Positions 28,734-39,083 of a DNA stretch of 64,000 nt are shown here, piece by piece. Each line of letters opens with the position of its first letter. Positions within the stretch are counted from its first letter, which is position 1. The stretch is from Blepharisma stoltei ATCC 30299 (lineage: Eukaryota; Protista; Ciliophora). A program made the position numbers and the translations under genes. The notes beneath the pieces are model-generated. The model had not been told where the DNA came from, searched no databases, and saw only the letters and a list, made by a program, of their open reading frames with translations. Location: the NCBI GenBank assembly GCA_965603825.1, contig CBFDEM010000029.1:124001-188000 (forward strand), written 5' to 3'.

Positions 28734-31700
28734 ATGACTGAGCTTTCTAGACAACTAGAGCAGCTACGTCAAGTGACTTTACCATCAGGATCTCAGCCTT
28801 CTTTTCTTTTTGACTTAAAAGACGCAAGCAAAATAGACAGAGACACGATATTTATGATCGGAATGAATGGTTTAGAAGAAATACGTCGCATTGACCACAC
28901 ATTTTTATCATTCTATTCAGATGTTTTCCAAGAAGATTTTGCAAATGCCCACTTGCACAGAGATAATCTCACAAAATCGCAAATATCTAAGCTAGATGAA
29001 GAGCTAACAAAGGTCATCCATTTGCTTGCTCCCCATTTCCTTAACCCATCCTGCCATAAAATTCTTGAATTGCTGGTTAGATTTTACAAAGTCCATCAAT
29101 ACCAAAGAGATGAGCTTCTTTCCAGCTTTTTGCCTTATCATGACACAAAATTTTTCACTCGCATGATAATGCTTTGTAAGCTTCAAGGAAGCCAATGGGA
29201 ATTTATGATAAGACACCAGCAGCAAGGATATATTATGCTAAGGAGTGATATCGTAAAAAAAAGTATGCAAGACTTATCACTGCTGGAGGTGATAATAGGG
29301 AAAATGAAGCTCTCACAAATACACATGAGATTTGCAGGAGTAGTTTGTTTGGATGTGATTCACAAAATAAGCACGTTAAGCAACTCTTTGCTTTACATTT
29401 TGCTGCCGTTTCTTTCAGAAGTATTAAGTGGATCTAAGGAGGAAAAAGTGCTAGGCTATTCTTTAGCTGTCAGAATTTCATTAAGACAAAACTTTTCTCC
29501 TCATTATTTGCAAGCATTATTCATCGACATTCTTAAAACTGCTGGCCCTGAAATCGAGCAAGGTTTAGCTACAATTTCGCTTCTGATGCATATACATAAG
29601 ACCCAAAGTTTACCAAAAAACATCATTGATCTATTTTACAGCGAAGAGATTCTCAAAGCTCTTGCAAATGTAAGCCAAAAGCATGATATCACACAGATAG
29701 TTAAAGCTGTTGAAAAAAAATTCATTAATAATTTAGGAAAAGATAAAGTTAATGAGCTGACTTTTCAGCTTTGCTCTACAGTGAATTATTCGAAAGCTGG
29801 AATTGAAGCTATTCTTAACTCATTACTAATGCAGTACTTGAATGTCAAAAAAGAGCTAAGAGATAAGGTGAAAAGTGGGTTTATTAAAGTTTTAGCAAAT
29901 TTATGGCAAAGATATGGAGACCAGGTTTTGGAGATTATTCCAAAAATAGTCAAAGAAGTTTGTGCTTCACATCCAGGTGGAGAAAGCAAAACAATGCTTT
30001 ATGACTTAATTTCTAAAGGCTTAAGTGGAATGCCATATGATCCCAGCTCAGACCTCCCACTTGTATTAGCATTGAGACACCCATCTCGCGAAATCAGACT
30101 TCACTCTCTATCCCAAATAAATTCACAAGCTTCGAAATACTATCAAGTGCTTCTAGGAATGCTATCAAGTGAAGATGATGTAGAAATTTTATTAGAGGCA
30201 GTCTCAGTTCCTGAATTGTCTAAAGTAGACCCAGAAAGTCTTTATCCAGTGATCCTGAAAAGATTTACACAATTTATTTCATATGAGGCCCAATATACCC
30301 CTCTTTTGAGAAAGCTGTTCACAATTCTCACTGTAGAAATTGCACCTCATATAGCAATCAGTTCAGAGCATCTTAAACTGATCTTTCTCGCTTATGATAA
30401 GCCAGAGTTAAGAGATCTTTGCCATAATGCTGCTTCGAATGCAAAACATCATCAAATATTGAAAGGATACCAAGGCCAAGACTTAAGCATTTATTTAAAA
30501 CAGTGGCTTTCTCAGCATTGGTGTGATATTTATACGTCTGTTGCTGAACTTTTGGACTGCCAAGTGATACTAGGCTTAGTGCCTGAAATTATTGAAGAAC
30601 TAGAGAAAAAACGAGAATTTTTAACAAAAGAAATAATTTCAAGCAGCTATTTAATAGTACAAAAGCTTATTGAAATGGATAACAATGCAACTGATATTTT
30701 TGAAGCTGTAATTAGAGCATGCCCTATAGCAAGAAATATAAAGTCAGAGCAAGTTCGTAAAGAAGCTGTAGAACTGATGAAGTGTTTGGTCATTTATCTT
30801 ATTCCAAGAGGTTCTGAGCTATGCAAAGGACTCTTAACCAAGCATTTTGGTAAATACAGCTTACAAATCTTACTAGAAATTTCAGAAAAATGCCCAGAGT
30901 CCCTCCATCTTGCAGTGTGCATCGCTGCTAATTCTGGCCAATTTAACTCTTTTCTCCAGACATATCCATACATTATATTAAGTATGGGGAGAGATTCCAT
31001 ATATCGAAATGCAGCAATTGTAGCGCTTGAACAATTCTTGCTAAAGCAACTCCCTAAAATTGAGATTGAGATTGAAATAGAAGAACGTTCAGATTTTAAA
31101 CAATTTGAGGAGCATTCTTCATTAATAAAAAAAATGCTTAAGAGGCTATTAAAATATAAAGCAGGGATCTCTCAAGATTCAAATTATATTGAGCATGCAG
31201 TTGCCAAAGTGATGCAAAATGAAGTCATTGATCTAATTAGTGTCGGATTTAATCAAGTTGCTTATGATAGAGCAAGATATTTGAGCATCCACAAAAAAAT
31301 TAAAAGTGATCATTTGACAGAAGTGTTTCTAGAAGCTGCAAAGTCTGATGAGGAGCTTGCTGAGGTAGCTGACAGGTTATGTGAATATAAAAACTGGGGA
31401 AATTTCCAGCATGAAAGTGTTTTTCTTTCACTTTTTGAAAAAGCAAGGCTGAGATTGGCTGCACTCAAAATCGTTACTCCTGAGACGTTCCGCAATCTTT
31501 CGCAAGAATTAAAAGTAAATTTATTTTTTACTTTAACAAAAATCCTACCTGGACTATCCAGCACTCACTCTATCGCAGTTCACGAACTTATTGACAATCT
31601 GCCAATTGATGCAAGTCTTTTATCACAAGCCATCAAAAATGCAGATATTGAAAAAATCGAGCCACTACTTGAAATAGTCCAATACAAGCACACACAAAGC

Positions 31701-34181
31701 TCTCCAGTGCTTATAGAAAGCCTATTTAGCCTGCTTCATAAAATAAACGAAAGCATCCAAACTTCAGAAAATGAATATCTAAAGCAGCTTGTCTTATTGG
31801 CATTGAAAATTCATCTTGCTTCTGAGCGAAAATTTGAGCTTAAAGGGGAGCACTTGAATATTATTCTAAGCAGCTTCAGAAATGAAATTGAATTTAATAT
31901 GCAAACTAAGCAGCAAGCTTTACACACACTTGCTGGATTTGCAGCTACAAAGCCCGCAGAAGTTCTTATTGCAATGGAGTCCTTATTTATGAGTTCCAGC
32001 AAAGAAAACGCTGCTGATGAATTTACCCTTTTTAAAGCAGCTTTAAGAGCTTTAGTCCCTTCCTTAGTAGATACTGATCTTTCAGTTTCCACGCTAGTTT
32101 CACAGCTGATTAACTTTTTTGAAGTAATCCCATTTGATATTAATGAGCTTGAAGATATCATCAGAATTGGAGGCCACACACATTTGCATCTTGCAGTCTC
32201 TTATTTATGCCAAACAATTGAAGATTTGTTTATCACTCAAGAATTCTTATCAAGATTTACGCTAGAAGAAATTCTGAGCTCGTTCAATGCGCTTATTTCA
32301 AGTCTTGAGCTCGAAAAAGTCAAAAAAACCAATGATTTTAAAGTCTTAGATCTCTTTGACTTAGAATTCAACGCAAAGGAATTCTTAAGCTTGATTCCCA
32401 AAAAGAAAGAAAAATCATCGCAGCTTTTAAGCGAGTTCTTGTACAGTCTGTTCACACTTAAGCATAAATCTGAAGAAATCATAGGATCTGGAGATAAAAA
32501 ACTGATTTCTCAATCAAAATCAGTTAAAAAGCAGCTTTTAAAACTGCTAGAAAGCATTAACAGAGCACTTGATAATGAGACCCTTTCCAAGTCTTTATTA
32601 TTAATCCTTGAAAAACCAGAAAAAAGAGCAAATATTGACGTCAAAAAAGAAGCCCTTGAATTTCTTCTAAAAAGACTAGAACTTTCAAACCACAACAAAT
32701 TTCACTCTTTAATTCCAATACTTTGTGCGATTCTTGAACTCTACACAGACAAAGCATCAGCACTGCATAAAGAAAAATACGACTCAAAAGCTGTTTATTT
32801 GCAGCTTACTATATTAGCAACCTATAATCTGCTGAAATCCTATGAAAATCCTAATCAGTTCTTAGAACTTTATGGAAAAACTATTCTTGAGTTCACCAAG
32901 TCAACTTGTTCAGAAATCAGAAGTTCAAGCAGCTTATGCTTTTCAGTCTTTTTCAGTGCTAAGTCTTCTGATATTTTGCCTTTTATAGAGCCATATTTAA
33001 GTCAGATTCTAAATATTCTTGCTGAAAATGATGAGGTTGTTATAGAGTGTGCACTTTCTTGCATCAAACATATGATGTCAGGGGCTAGGGATTTCTTAAG
33101 TCCACATATAGAAGAGCTAATCTTTAAACTTTGCTCTATAGAATTCGATACTACTGAGTTACTGAGTCTTGTGCCCACTTATATTTCACCTAGAATCATT
33201 ATAGTTTGCCTTAATAGTCTGCTTGGTTGGCTTAAAGACAATTTCAATGGACTTATTAGACTGTTAGAGATGAGTAAAATTTTAGGTGAAAAAATAACCT
33301 CCCAAGATGCAGAAATATATAAAGAGTCATTATTTGCTTTTTATAAAGATGCTATAACTTTGCCAGAAAAGCTTAAAGATGAGTTAGATTTGAAGCAAGT
33401 AAAAGCCTTAAGTAGCACAACAAGTGACAGCTTTTCATCTTTTTCTCTATCTTTAACCAACCAGCAACTTAAGCCAGCATTTTCAGAAATAGCAGATTGG
33501 TGCTTGGAGAAGGCTGAAGATGATGACTATTCATTCCATAGACTTTTGACCTTATTTTCTATAACTGGAGCCCTCACTGATAAACTGAAAAGCCTATTTG
33601 TTTCCTATTATGCTTATTTATTTGACGTAATTATTGATACGCTAAATAAAATATATGAGGCTTACCAAATTGAGACTAAGAAAAGAAAGAGAAATCAGGG
33701 AAAATTGTATCTAGAAGTCAACTCAATTGTTTTGCAGTGTCTGGCCAAGCTGTCAGCTCATGATAAAGATAAGTTTTTGACTATTGATAGGTACGACAAG
33801 CTTTCAGTTTCGCTTTCAAATCAATTGAAGATGGTTGGACTTAAGAATAAATATAGGAAGTACACAGAAGCCAACGTTTTACCAGCCATTCATGCATTGA
33901 TTACTGAAACCCACGACCAAGCAATTTGGCAAAGCTTCAATTATAAGATTCTTTTGAATTCAAGAAACGAAAACCCTGAGGTTCGCTGTGTTTCTTTACT
34001 AACAGTCAACAAAATTCTCCTTACTCTTGGCAAAGAATACCTTACCTTATTGCCTGACATAATGCCTTTCGTTTCAGAAGCACTTGAAGACGAAAACGAC
34101 TCCGTTACAAACATTGCTAAAATGCTTTTGACTCAGCTCGAAACTCTGAGTGGAGAAAACATCAAAGAACACATAAGATAA
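28734..34181 (+). CDS. UTP10: U3 snoRNP protein UTP10/HEATR1 (1815 aa)
   Basis: MTELSRQL...SFLFD..A..ID N-terminus, FLPYHDT motif, HEAT repeats, C-terminal LLPDIMPFVSEALEDENDSV and BP28CT-like region. Confidence 0.92.
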   Translation: MTELSRQLEQLRQVTLPSGSQPSFLFDLKDASKIDRDTIFMIGMNGLEEIRRIDHTFLSFYSDVFQEDFANAHLHRDNLTKSQISKLDEELTKVIHLLAPHFLNPSCHKILELLVRFYKVHQYQRDELLSSFLPYHDTKFFTRMIMLCKLQGSQWEFMIRHQQQGYIMLRSDIVKKSMQDLSLLEVIIGKMKLSQIHMRFAGVVCLDVIHKISTLSNSLLYILLPFLSEVLSGSKEEKVLGYSLAVRISLRQNFSPHYLQALFIDILKTAGPEIEQGLATISLLMHIHKTQSLPKNIIDLFYSEEILKALANVSQKHDITQIVKAVEKKFINNLGKDKVNELTFQLCSTVNYSKAGIEAILNSLLMQYLNVKKELRDKVKSGFIKVLANLWQRYGDQVLEIIPKIVKEVCASHPGGESKTMLYDLISKGLSGMPYDPSSDLPLVLALRHPSREIRLHSLSQINSQASKYYQVLLGMLSSEDDVEILLEAVSVPELSKVDPESLYPVILKRFTQFISYEAQYTPLLRKLFTILTVEIAPHIAISSEHLKLIFLAYDKPELRDLCHNAASNAKHHQILKGYQGQDLSIYLKQWLSQHWCDIYTSVAELLDCQVILGLVPEIIEELEKKREFLTKEIISSSYLIVQKLIEMDNNATDIFEAVIRACPIARNIKSEQVRKEAVELMKCLVIYLIPRGSELCKGLLTKHFGKYSLQILLEISEKCPESLHLAVCIAANSGQFNSFLQTYPYIILSMGRDSIYRNAAIVALEQFLLKQLPKIEIEIEIEERSDFKQFEEHSSLIKKMLKRLLKYKAGISQDSNYIEHAVAKVMQNEVIDLISVGFNQVAYDRARYLSIHKKIKSDHLTEVFLEAAKSDEELAEVADRLCEYKNWGNFQHESVFLSLFEKARLRLAALKIVTPETFRNLSQELKVNLFFTLTKILPGLSSTHSIAVHELIDNLPIDASLLSQAIKNADIEKIEPLLEIVQYKHTQSSPVLIESLFSLLHKINESIQTSENEYLKQLVLLALKIHLASERKFELKGEHLNIILSSFRNEIEFNMQTKQQALHTLAGFAATKPAEVLIAMESLFMSSSKENAADEFTLFKAALRALVPSLVDTDLSVSTLVSQLINFFEVIPFDINELEDIIRIGGHTHLHLAVSYLCQTIEDLFITQEFLSRFTLEEILSSFNALISSLELEKVKKTNDFKVLDLFDLEFNAKEFLSLIPKKKEKSSQLLSEFLYSLFTLKHKSEEIIGSGDKKLISQSKSVKKQLLKLLESINRALDNETLSKSLLLILEKPEKRANIDVKKEALEFLLKRLELSNHNKFHSLIPILCAILELYTDKASALHKEKYDSKAVYLQLTILATYNLLKSYENPNQFLELYGKTILEFTKSTCSEIRSSSSLCFSVFFSAKSSDILPFIEPYLSQILNILAENDEVVIECALSCIKHMMSGARDFLSPHIEELIFKLCSIEFDTTELLSLVPTYISPRIIIVCLNSLLGWLKDNFNGLIRLLEMSKILGEKITSQDAEIYKESLFAFYKDAITLPEKLKDELDLKQVKALSSTTSDSFSSFSLSLTNQQLKPAFSEIADWCLEKAEDDDYSFHRLLTLFSITGALTDKLKSLFVSYYAYLFDVIIDTLNKIYEAYQIETKKRKRNQGKLYLEVNSIVLQCLAKLSAHDKDKFLTIDRYDKLSVSLSNQLKMVGLKNKYRKYTEANVLPAIHALITETHDQAIWQSFNYKILLNSRNENPEVRCVSLLTVNKILLTLGKEYLTLLPDIMPFVSEALEDENDSVTNIAKMLLTQLETLSGENIKEHIR

Positions 34182-34288
34182 TAGAATTCTTTTAAAATAT
34201 TTCTTGATGTTTCAGTTGTTATTTATTAGAAACAATTTATCGTATAAAAGCTCATCCATATAGCTTCTTCTAATAGTGTATTTCTAAA

Positions 34289-35240
34289 ATGGGATGCTGC
34301 CAAGGCAGAGTAAATTTTAAATAGAGCCAAAAGCCTTTACAAAGCATAAATGCACCAACTAAAAAAGAGGAGCCTGACACAATTGACAAAGCTTACTTTT
34401 CCTCTATAAGCAGCAATTTCCAAACAGCAGCTCACAACTATTATCGAAATAATTTCAGAGTAACGTCAGTTGACAGCAGGAAGGTTAACGAAGAACTAGA
34501 GTAAACGTAACATAGAGAATTTTACAATGCCAGAGCATCTGTAGATATCAATAAACTTGCCAAACTTCTCAGCTCCGAAACAGTTTTCACCCTTGATGAA
34601 GGAGTCCTTCTTCATCCATGGGCAGAAAATCCACGCACCATAGGAGCTCTAACTGCTATGCAGATTGGAATTTTTGCTTCAGACAATGACATACTAAAAG
34701 ATTCCAAATTTAATGAAGGAATGCTCAGCTCACGAGTCCTTGAACTTCTCTTGAACTTTGCAGCATCACTGGAAAGATACAAATTTGAGGCCTCAATTCT
34801 GACACTCAGTTATTTGTCAAAAAATAACCCAGACATTGCTGAAGCTTTGATTAAGAGAAACGCACTTCCGATCTTTATAAGACACATGAGAGATGGCAAG
34901 GAAGGACTGAGATCCACAGCTGCTCTGTGCTGTAGAAATCTATATGTAGGAAGACAAAATATGCAAAAACTGTTTGTTAGAGAAGGAGGATGCAGCTTAT
35001 TGGTACACTTATTGAAGTCAGATGACAGCTCAACTGTGTTTGAAACTATTTTGAATATATTAGATTTAATTTTAGACAATGAAGATACCATACAGCTGGA
35101 CATAAAGCGGCATTTAGAAGAATGCCACATTGTAAAGCATCTGCAGACGATAATAGAGGTAAAAAAGTATATAGAAATCTGATAAGTATGATCAAAATAC
35201 AATAAGTGAAGCTATAAAACTGAAGAATTCATTTGAATAA
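34289..35240 (+). CDS. ARO: Armadillo-repeats-only (ARO)-like protein, N-myristoylated/palmitoylated (~301 aa), three micro-introns
   Basis: MGCCQGR N-terminus; HPWAENPRTIGALTAMQIGIFAS; ALPIFIRHMR...AALCCRNLYV...GGCSLLVHLL...FETILNILDLILD is colinear with apicomplexan ARO as I recall it. Confidence 0.75.
34310..34324 (+). other. 15-nt intron GTAAATTTTAAATAG
   Basis: Removes an in-frame TAG after MGCCQGR. Confidence 0.88.
34501..34515 (+). other. 15-nt intron GTAAACGTAACATAG
   Basis: Removes an in-frame TAA; frame continues into ORF 34658. Confidence 0.88.
35159..35174 (+). other. 16-nt intron GTAAAAAAGTATATAG
   Basis: A at position 11; splicing yields a terminal helix KSDKYDQNTISEAIKLKNSFE* instead of an abrupt TGA-TAA. 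Confidence 0.7.
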
Positions 35241-35257
35241 AACTTGAAATAATATTA

Positions 35258-36145
35258 TTATCTTGCAAGCAGCCTTCTAGCTTTGAATCTTTTTCTTTGC
35301 ACTCCGTCATCGTTATTATCTGTAGGAATTTCTTCGTTGGAGGGATTAGTGCTTGTTTCTGAGTGAAATCCTGCACTATAGCACTGGTTGTTTCCTGAAA
35401 AAATAACGCATGTCTCATTCCTATAATCAGAAGCCCTAGTATAATTTTCATGAATTCCCCAATTCATTTGAGGAGAATAAGTGTCTGCTTGAGGGTATTC
35501 TTTATTGAATAATGAAAGAGGCGTGCTTGCTCCGAAAATACTTGAATTAGAATTAGAAAAAATGTATGGGCTTGGGCAGGCTTCTTCGTATATAGGAGTG
35601 ATGCTTCGGCAAGTTTCTTTGCGCTTACCGTAATTTTGGTTTGAAAAGCTATCAATACTCTGTTGTTTATTTATTTCTCGGTTTTCTTGTTTGAAGCTAC
35701 TATAAAATTCAAATGAACTCTTCGAGCCATTACTTTCTCTTCCAACTGTTTCAGTCAAATATGAAGATTTTCTTAGAGTCCCCCCTTTATAGTTTCTTCT
35801 GAAACCAGTTTTTAGCTTAGGTGAGTCTTTTAAGTCTGGAGATTCTGAGCTTATTTTTAATTCAGTCTTAATATCAAATAATCCCGCTCCTAAGCTTGAT
35901 TTTGGTGCAAAAAAGCTAATTGGCTTTATATTTTCTAGTTGTTTAAATTGTGCTTTTGATAAATTTGACATTGGAGGTGGAATTATAGCGTTAATCACTT
36001 TAGAAGTTATACTTGAAATTTGTCAGAAAATAAGATACGAGGTTCTAACTGAGCCAGAAATTAGTTGCACAGAGTTCCCTATAAATCTCCTGAGCACAGC
36101 AGAAGTTGGATTCAAAATTTTTGATTTAAATCTATCAAACGACAT
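35258..36145 (-). CDS. Hypothetical Ser-rich protein (295 aa)
   Basis: ATG at 36145 is in frame with ORF 35258-35998 via TGA at 36023. Confidence 0.65.
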
Positions 36146-36785: not shown

Positions 36786-39083
36786 ATGTTCACTTTCCTG
36801 TTTTTTCAATTATTTTATTTAGGATTCTCAAGGATCAATTATTTTAACAACGATTTGCCTTTTCCCTTTGACAACTACACAAGCAAGTCAACAATTATAG
36901 GAAAAGGCCCTTCTTCATGCATTTCAAGTGCTCAGACAGATGGAAGATGCAATAGCTATAACAACTTCGAAGACTGCAGCTATGATGGCGGTGACTGCTG
37001 CCGAAAAACCTGCGTTAAAAACTGTTATTATTCATCTAGTTCAACTACTCCATCACAAATGCCAATTGAAAATTTAAATAATACATGCCCTTATGAGTGT
37101 GGATATTCAGGATACAATTGTACAGATTCTCAAGGGTGCAGTGAATGCTACCATGGGACTTGCTACACAATCTCACAATGCCCCGACACATCAATGAAAT
37201 ACTCATATGGGCAATGTTGCATCTGTGAAGACGGCTGAGCTGGGTTTTCTTGTGCATCTCCTATATGCTCTGCAGGATGTAAACACGGAACTTGCATTAG
37301 TCGAGACAATTGTTCATGCCAAACAGGCTGGACAGGGACTACTTGCAACACTCCTATTTGTTCAAGCTGCATAAATGGGGTCTGTATATCCCCAGAAGTT
37401 TGTAAATGCAGCTCTTCGTTGTGAACAGGCTCAAGCTGTGATGAGCCATTAAGCAATCCAGCTTGTGTGAATGGCTACCCTATAAGCCCAAATGTGTGTA
37501 AGTGTAACACTGGGTTTGGAGGCGACATTTGTGATACTCCATTATGCCAGTCAGTTACTTGTGTTAATGGATGGTGCATTAATCCTGATATGTGTGAATG
37601 CTATGCTCCATATTACACCGCAAATTTGACTTTAAGCGTGCATTGTAATGATATTAACTGTGCTGATGTATACGGACTTTATTGTACTTCATGTGATAAA
37701 AGCTCTTGTTTGAAATGTGTTGAGGGGTTTTACCCGAGCGGAATTGACTGTGTATCTTGCAGCTATTTACATCCTGGCTGCTTGAAATGTAATAGCACGA
37801 CATGTTTCAAGTGTAATTTTCCTTATTCCGCAATGGCTTCTGGAGAAGGCTTTTGCGATTTTGGAGGATATATAGAATTTTCTAGTCCGACTTATAGTGT
37901 AGTCGATACCGACTCAGAGGTTGATATTCTTTTAAACAGGCTTGGAGGAAGCCTTGGAAAAGTTTCTGTTGATATTATTACTCAAGATCTAACTGCAAGC
38001 TCTGTCAATATTAAGCAACAAAAGTATTTAGATTATCAATATTATTACAAAACTATAACATTTTTGCAGGGAGAGACAAGCAAAACTGCAGCAATCACAA
38101 TTTTCAATACTTTTGATGAAAGCTCTAGCTCTAAACAGTTTAGATTGATCATGCACAATCCAACAGGAGGAGCTATTTTAGGAGCGGTGCAGAACACTCC
38201 TATATTGGAGTATTTTTGAAGCGATGAAGGAATCAACACTTATTCTTATGCTACAGTTGAAATCTTTGATGATCCAGATGCTCCTTATCCTCAATCAACA
38301 ATTTTGCTTTTAGATAATGACCCCATTGATTTTTATATGCCCTACACAGTTAAAAATAGCGACACATTAGAACTTGATATATTTTCCTATTATAATTCGT
38401 CTACTCCAATGGCAGAAGGGGGATATTATTTTATTGTGGAAATAAGAAAGCATGATGATATTTACTCCGGAATTACTGGAAATTGTTTTTTTCCAAATAA
38501 TGATTTTACAGTTTCTTCCAGATATTATAAAAACTTGCTATCTAATGATAATGGAGACGGGAGCTATACTTCAAAGTTTAGTATCCCAGACAGAGGACTT
38601 TATACAATTAATGTTACTTATGCATTAGGAGGAGTAGAAGCAACTATATGAGATAAACTGGGAAATTTAAATATTGCTCCAGAGTTCCAAATTCAAAATA
38701 AATTAGGGGCATTTGATTTGGATTATCACAAAATCGGGACAGTATCAACATCATTGTGGAAAGCAAAAATTGTTCCTCAAAGCGATCTGACGAATGCAGC
38801 AATTTCGGTAGTTCAACCGATTAATGACAAGATATCTGTGTATATTAATGAAAACATTTTGCTGGATTGCTTTGGAAATTGTACAAGCTCACAGATGAAT
38901 TTTTTAAGCAGTTCTGTATATGATTTAATTATAGATTATACTCACTTTAACGAAAATGAGTATATCGGCTTTAGTATAAGTTGGGTCGGTAGCTTTGGTA
39001 GCAAAGAAATTGAAAAGTTGTATGCAATTAAGGAAATAGGTCAAAAATTTAATGCTTATAGTGTTCTTCCGGATGAGTGTTAG
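36786..39083 (+). CDS. Secreted mosaic protein: LNR, EGF repeats, furin-like Cys, Calx-beta, filamin-like, PA14-like (765 aa)
   Basis: One frame via TGA at 37236, ~37422, 38217 and 38649. DGRCNSYNNFEDCSYDGGDCC (LNR); IEFSSPTYSV...R.GGS.G.VSV..T...TA...DY...TITF..GET.KT (Calx-beta); DNGDGSY (filamin-like). Confidence 0.8.

Follow-up and report, generated by a model that had tools for sequence, protein, structure and literature searches.

The locus and its transcripts

The window analysed here, i.e. the whole stretch of 64,000 nucleotides of Blepharisma stoltei DNA, contains at positions 34289-35240 a gene of the family of the apicomplexan rhoptry protein ARO, the parts of which are as follows.

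34289..35240, forward strand: ARO-family gene, 4 exons and 3 introns
34289..34309, forward strand: exon 1, 7 codons, with Met, Gly2 (predicted N-myristoylation) and Cys3-Cys4 (predicted S-palmitoylation)
34310..34324, forward strand: intron 1, 15 nt, phase 0, GT-AG
34325..34500, forward strand: exon 2, residues 8-66, covering the N-terminal arm (low confidence in the model) and the beginning of the first helix
34501..34515, forward strand: intron 2, 15 nt, phase 2, GT-AG
34516..35158, forward strand: exon 3, residues 66-280, most of the armadillo superhelix; Pfam Arm
34613..34672, forward strand: signature loop and helix, with H99, W101, A102, P105, L111, Q115 and I118
34934..34939, forward strand: conserved R206-N207 (R176-N177 in Plasmodium numbering)
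35159..35174, forward strand: intron 3, 16 nt, phase 0, GT-AG
35175..35240, forward strand: exon 4, residues 281-301 and TAA stop, terminal helix

The spliced exons sum to 906 nt, that is 301 codons and a stop. Introns of 15, 15 and 16 nt and a product of about 301 residues starting with MGCC had been proposed in the first-pass annotation, and both are borne out by transcript-like contigs from four public runs of one study, which are presumed to be RNA: 15 nt are missing at 34310 and again at 34501 in all four runs, and 16 nt at 35157/35159 in three of them, the contig of the fourth stopping short of the site. The contigs of the four runs start at 34288-34290, so that the exon encoding MGCC lies inside the transcript; gene structure and splicing are, in this way, directly established. 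The B. stoltei genome has introns of 15-16 nt and reads UGA as Trp (bioRxiv 10.1101/2021.12.14.471607).

It had also been anticipated that annotation would miss the gene, the list of open reading frames offering a 174-aa piece, which is part of exon 3. In fact, exon 3 is a 100% match to a 301-aa public protein (CAG9321754.1, UniRef A0AAU9J7J2; P0001 in the following) deposited as an 'unnamed protein product'. In public data the gene is unrecognised, rather than unannotated. The sequence motifs quoted in the first-pass annotation are all present. P0001 was used for whole-protein work (alignments, structure, Atlas and Pfam), and exon 3 for the sequence search.

Upstream, an intronless UTP10/HEATR1-like gene (BP28CT; window 28734-34181, forward strand; 1815 aa) ends 107 nt before the ARO gene, and no contig of the four runs spans the intergenic gap. 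Downstream, an expressed ORF of about 246 aa, convergent with the ARO gene and without a Pfam match, occupies 35258-35998 of the reverse strand, its transcript contigs abutting the ARO transcript at its 3' end or merging with it, and a multi-exon gene for a surface protein with Cysteine-rich EGF-like and Calx-beta regions lies at 36786-39083 of the forward strand. No functional clue comes from the UTP10/HEATR1-like gene or from the downstream ORF.

Sequence and structural evidence for ARO identity

When exon 3 is compared with the PDB, PfARO (5EWP) comes first (E 1.3e-21, 80 bits) in a single stretch of 203 residues that includes the non-repeat HPW loop, whereas SPAG6 and importin-alpha give partial, repeat-type matches only, at 33-51 bits. 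The HPWA..P.TIGAL block, on which the first-pass annotation had relied, aligns with PfARO within this one continuous match. With a profile of 47 family sequences, 5EWP scores 303 bits in the PDB, the best natural non-ARO protein 123 and Vac8 98. In the opposite direction, the top seven matches of Neospora and Plasmodium gaboni ARO in the B. stoltei genome are all family loci, the paralogue C27 ranking first (92 and 89 bits, respectively) and the window gene second (78 and 81 bits). Neither Vac8 nor another ARM family is the best match, PfARO leading the forward search and ARO-family loci the reverse one, and the reciprocal best hit with apicomplexan ARO holds for the in-paralogues taken as a group.

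Conservation is concentrated in particular columns of the alignment, 24 of which are shared by the heterotrich core, apicomplexans with chromerids, and dinoflagellates, including H99, W101, P105, L111, Q115, R206 and N207. The residues of the signature loop and helix (H99, W101, A102, P105, L111, Q115 and I118, equivalent to Plasmodium H72, W74, A75, P78, L84, Q88 and I91) are kept at 88-100% in the heterotrich core, in apicomplexans and chromerids, and in dinoflagellates and Perkinsus. Reportedly, H72/W74 and L84/Q88 of PfARO are tied to the recruitment of AIP. The Gly2 and Cys pair (G2, C3, C4) lies in a transcribed exon, as expected by the first-pass annotation, and the motif recurs in P. 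gaboni and Neospora ARO; Gly2 together with a Cys within residues 3-12 is found in 145 of 166 full-length-looking family proteins. In the 301 residues of P0001 Arm alone passes the Pfam cut-off, with no IBB hit.

The AlphaFold model of P0001 (pLDDT 87.7), obtained from an alignment that included apicomplexan homologues and without templates, consists of an all-helical domain at residues 57-301, preceded by residues 1-49 at low confidence. Foldseek ranks 5EWP first (E 1.7e-11, TM 0.86 by target), and VIA-align gives it a Z of 28.5 and an rmsd of 2.1 A over 234 residues, the next structure reaching 20.2 and Vac8 17.8. The nearest Atlas cluster is a 288-aa Arm family dominated by Apicomplexa (0.96).

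Two types of armadillo protein were considered as closest relatives and rejected. Vac8 is a many-repeat protein of more than 500 aa, as opposed to 301, with the lower Z and bit scores given above; SPAG6 (PF16) and importin-alpha, both of about 500 aa with 8-10 repeats, produce the partial matches of 33-51 bits, and the IBB domain of importin-alpha is not hit.

That the gene might not be ARO at all, being instead a generic armadillo protein (Vac8, importin-alpha or SPAG6) with a convergent N-terminus, or else a transferred or contaminant gene, draws on an overall identity to apicomplexan AROs of just 24-27% and on the fact that armadillo repeats attract one another in searches. We regard this as very improbable in view of the non-repeat signature loop, the continuous single-stretch match, the gap in structural scores, the shared introns described below, the heterotrich-type 15/16-nt introns, the ordinary ciliate-type neighbours and the many heterotrich relatives. 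Indeed, because intron positions are shared and because of the outcome of the reciprocal searches, it is effectively refuted.

Intron positions shared with myzozoan ARO genes

To map the intron sites of ARO genes, public proteins were fitted to the DNA that encodes them. Intron 3 agrees in alignment column and in phase with the final intron of the ARO genes of P. gaboni, Neospora and Vitrella, within a block that is locally gap-free. In the ARO genes of Plasmodium, Neospora and Vitrella the first intron comes one codon downstream of the site of intron 1, and a candidate intron is found exactly at the apicomplexan first-intron site in four B. stoltei paralogues. Intron 2 is common to the paralogues C27 and C2a and is not found in myzozoan AROs. 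Environmental heterotrich-type loci have candidate introns of 15-16 nt, predicted from the sequence, at two further myzozoan sites, in phase 1 after an SFL-x-x-x motif and in phase 0 after a D-L-I-L motif. In all, about four of the six heterotrich sites fall on one of the 11 myzozoan sites, an agreement that is rated at about 1e-6 under a crude uniform model; for the exact match of the window gene's own intron alone, the value under this model is about 0.04. Convergent armadillo similarity does not account for these coincidences.

Distribution, phylogeny and paralogues

A search of 1.84 billion representatives recovers a coherent family, mostly of 240-350 aa and with the same loop. Its named members include proteins from Plasmodium, Neospora, Eimeria, Cryptosporidium, Theileria, Babesia and gregarines, and, outside these, from Chromera, Vitrella, Platyproteum, Perkinsus olseni, Symbiodinium, Effrenium, Prorocentrum and Stentor coeruleus. 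In an IQ-TREE analysis of 50 sequences, unrooted and with some long branches, the ciliate-type sequences all fall on one side (98/96), the apicomplexans without Siedleckia form a clade (99/99) and the myzozoan groups follow taxonomy; the window gene lies on a short branch. Gene tree and gene structure fit vertical descent.

Candidate introns of 15-16 nt are present in most of the ciliate loci inspected, including two from an organism in which UAA/UAG encode Gln, and these loci look like those of heterotrichs or close relatives. The two loci in question (L034 and L035, SRR24204725) are Condylostoma- or karyorelict-like ARO-family genes in which this first-intron site is likewise taken by candidate introns of 15 nt. 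A search with a ciliate-centred alignment returned four heterotrich-like genes and one weak match. A 351-aa family protein without Gly2 (P0027, locus L031) is encoded by an AT-rich (28% GC), standard-code transcript of single-cell type (SRR22390408), the source of which may be another, non-heterotrich ciliate class. P0028 (TSA GILJ/GILK) we take to be probably from a colponemid, with the caution that both proteins share one 90% cluster. Among the best 150 of 266 matches, many of them unnamed, no member from Tetrahymena, Paramecium or spirotrichs was identified, which suggests that the family is absent from them.

In the B. stoltei genome (41.5 Mb, searched for paralogues, myosins and cyclases) 11 loci match the family profile at E < 1e-16 and a further one matches it weakly, 11 of the 12 having an MGCC start. 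Besides the contig of the window gene, these roughly 12 loci (L009-L019, L025) are distributed over contigs C27, C2, C51, C56, C58, C18, C37, C5 and C9. C27 and C2a, 56% and 45% identical to the window gene, make up with it a conservative group, in which the signature is complete and the three introns are shared, the C27 paralogue spanning 952 nt; H99, Q115 and R206 have been lost in most of the other paralogues. In the copies on C37 and C5, a few hundred extra residues separate the MGCC start from the ARO domain (P0192, 640 aa). In P0187 (L012, C2:343390-344151) the acylation motif is replaced by a REEP/HVA22-like N-terminal segment (PF03134, E 4e-4), matched at 6e-6 and 8.5e-4 among its relatives (P0088, P0091, P0144), all of these matches, that of P0187 included, falling short of the cut-off. 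The REEP-like variant is kept in several heterotrich-like sequences, suggesting, as far as sequence allows, an ARO form anchored in the ER or the alveoli.

The ARO identity has strong support from the sequence comparisons, the structure, the tree and the introns at shared sites, and family membership, fold and motif conservation can be taken as directly established. The family identity put forward in the first-pass annotation stands; what does not is the notion of a sole orthologue, as there are about 12 co-orthologues, C27 being the reciprocal best hit. Almost certainly, the gene is a heterotrich ARO co-orthologue that descends vertically from the ancestor of the alveolates and that has multiplied in Blepharisma to about 12 copies.

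Proposed function and partners

PfARO is found on the cytosolic face of rhoptries through dual acylation, and AC beta is recruited through AIP (PMC5746546); Gly2 of PfARO is likely essential (PMC8544853), and TgARO tethers rhoptries apically in a palmitoylation-dependent manner (PMC3567180). The canonical ARO-AIP system is not followed even by CpARO (PMC13432881). In the B. stoltei protein, Gly2 would be myristoylated and Cys3/Cys4 palmitoylated, fixing it to the cytosolic face of a membrane, and the armadillo superhelix would expose a conserved surface (the H99/W101/P105 loop, L111/Q115 and R206/N207) for the binding of a partner. From these features we infer that it is, with high probability, an acylated, membrane-anchored armadillo adaptor.

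MyoF is the motor partner of TgARO, and it had been named as a possible partner in the first-pass annotation also. This does not hold for B. stoltei: its genome has no WD40-tailed myosin of the MyoF type, the two myosins found (C21 and C9) having a head-IQ architecture with no recognised tail domain and a head-IQ-RCC1 architecture, respectively. The latter, in our view, resembles the Toxoplasma conoid myosin MyoH in architecture. The myosin loci are L049:967-5001 and L050:757-5532, and B. stoltei appears to have just these two. The same genome contains 85 cyclase domains, of which 78 are strong and, for the most part, paired at a spacing of about 1.5 kb, the other seven being weak and unpaired; neither a closely spaced, twin-domain type nor an AC beta-like cyclase was recognised in this domain-level search. 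There are about 39 genes for paired-domain nucleotide cyclases, with several tandem clusters (C5, C25, C37, C45 and C58). The apicomplexan ARO-AIP-AC beta-MyoF circuit cannot be intact in B. stoltei and, therefore, the gene is placed in the ARO protein family and outside that system.

The membrane to which the protein would be fixed is most likely that of a secretory organelle, namely the pigment (cortical) granules of Blepharisma, and the adaptor would couple these granules to the cortical cytoskeleton for their clustering, transport or positioning. This is taken as the leading reading because the cortical and pigment granules of heterotrichs are extrusomes (PMC9774955); the organelle and the role we infer by analogy with ARO, and an extrusome or secretory-organelle function of this kind is quite conceivable, though we would stop short of calling it probable. 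Counting against it are the lack of a MyoF-type myosin, the expansion to 12 genes, the departure of CpARO itself from the canonical system and the lack, among the best 150 of 266 matches, of any member identified in Tetrahymena, Paramecium or spirotrichs, all of which dock extrusomes efficiently, the Nd machinery having been defined in Tetrahymena and Paramecium.

Gly2-Cys motifs direct proteins to many membranes, and the adaptor might serve at another one, such as the cortex or alveolar sacs, the contractile vacuole, or the oral apparatus or ciliary membrane; the positioning of rhoptries would then be a myzozoan specialisation of a more general membrane-cytoskeleton adaptor. The 12-gene expansion and the copy in which acylation has given way to a REEP/HVA22-like domain, of a type usual in ER membranes, suggest several membranes and jobs, and the myosin result also fits; however, the surface residues are equally conserved in the core heterotrich clade and in rhoptry-bearing taxa, which suggests the same type of partner, and the localised members are all on secretory organelles (PMC3567180, PMC13432881, PMC5746546). 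We consider this alternative possible, if rather doubtful. Unlikely is a Vac8-like job in the tethering, fusion or inheritance of lysosome-related or food-vacuole membranes: Blepharisma is phagotrophic, Vac8 clusters are among the Atlas neighbours, and ARO has been described as a Vac8 homologue and rhoptries as lysosome-related (PMC3567180), but the similarity to Vac8 is that of generic armadillo proteins (Z 17.8 versus 28.5; 98 versus 303 bits) and the ARO literature surveyed places none of the localised proteins on a digestive vacuole.

Returning to granule positioning, a broader and more tentative proposal would be that ARO was the ancestral adaptor of alveolate extrusive organelles, that heterotrichs position their granules with an expanded family, that rhoptry positioning goes back to the handling of extrusomes by a free-living ancestor, and that model ciliates have lost or replaced the protein. 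The known shared alveolate machinery, i.e. the Nd proteins, acts at fusion, and an organelle-side adaptor, if true, would be a second layer of it and would bear on the homology of rhoptries and extrusomes. The question is testable in Stentor or Blepharisma, the extrusomes of which are pigmented and can be scored by eye.

Comparison with known systems

The members in heterotrichs, dinoflagellates and Perkinsus, along with the shared introns, make the origin of ARO at least as old as the ciliate-myzozoan ancestor; with relatives in the free-living Blepharisma, ARO predates parasitism. In the literature surveyed there is no report of a ciliate ARO; a 2026 paper takes ARO no further than Chromera (PMC13432881), and Beck 2013, in the part available, draws the analogy of rhoptry and trichocyst and names no ciliate ARO (PMC3567180). 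A ciliate ARO is, therefore, probably reported here for the first time. Ciliate AROs could easily escape notice, since the copies found belong to heterotrichs and their public entries bear no protein name.

With the apicomplexan AROs (PfARO 5EWP and those of Toxoplasma/Neospora and Cryptosporidium) the Blepharisma protein has in common Gly2 and the Cys pair, the H-x-W-A-x-x-P-x-T-(I/V)-G-A-L loop, the fold, the size class (about 270-350 aa), the intron positions and an architecture of armadillo repeats with no other domain. It differs in an N-terminal arm about 25 residues longer, in having about 12 paralogues instead of one gene, and in belonging to a host without rhoptries and without a WD40-tailed MyoF, where its role is putative. 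The chromerid AROs (two copies in Chromera velia, and Vitrella), recognised earlier as orthologues (PMC13432881), are likewise from free-living alveolates and have the same motifs and shared introns; chromerids, however, are myzozoans near the Apicomplexa, whereas the Blepharisma gene is on the other side of the split between ciliates and myzozoans.

Yeast Vac8 offers a parallel as an adaptor on organelle membranes that combines an N-terminal myristoyl/palmitoyl anchor with armadillo repeats, features that are in part predicted on the Blepharisma side, but it has more than 500 aa and many more repeats, does not match the signature loop and scores far lower. Finally, the Nd9/Nd6/NdP1/Nd-GTPase complex, an exocytic complex common to alveolates (PMC13739732), sets a precedent in being secretion machinery that ciliates and apicomplexans have in common, and Nd9 also has an armadillo fold. 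Nd9 is, however, a different and much larger protein that acts at the fusion rosette, and its likeness to ARO is one of fold class, for which homology is not claimed.
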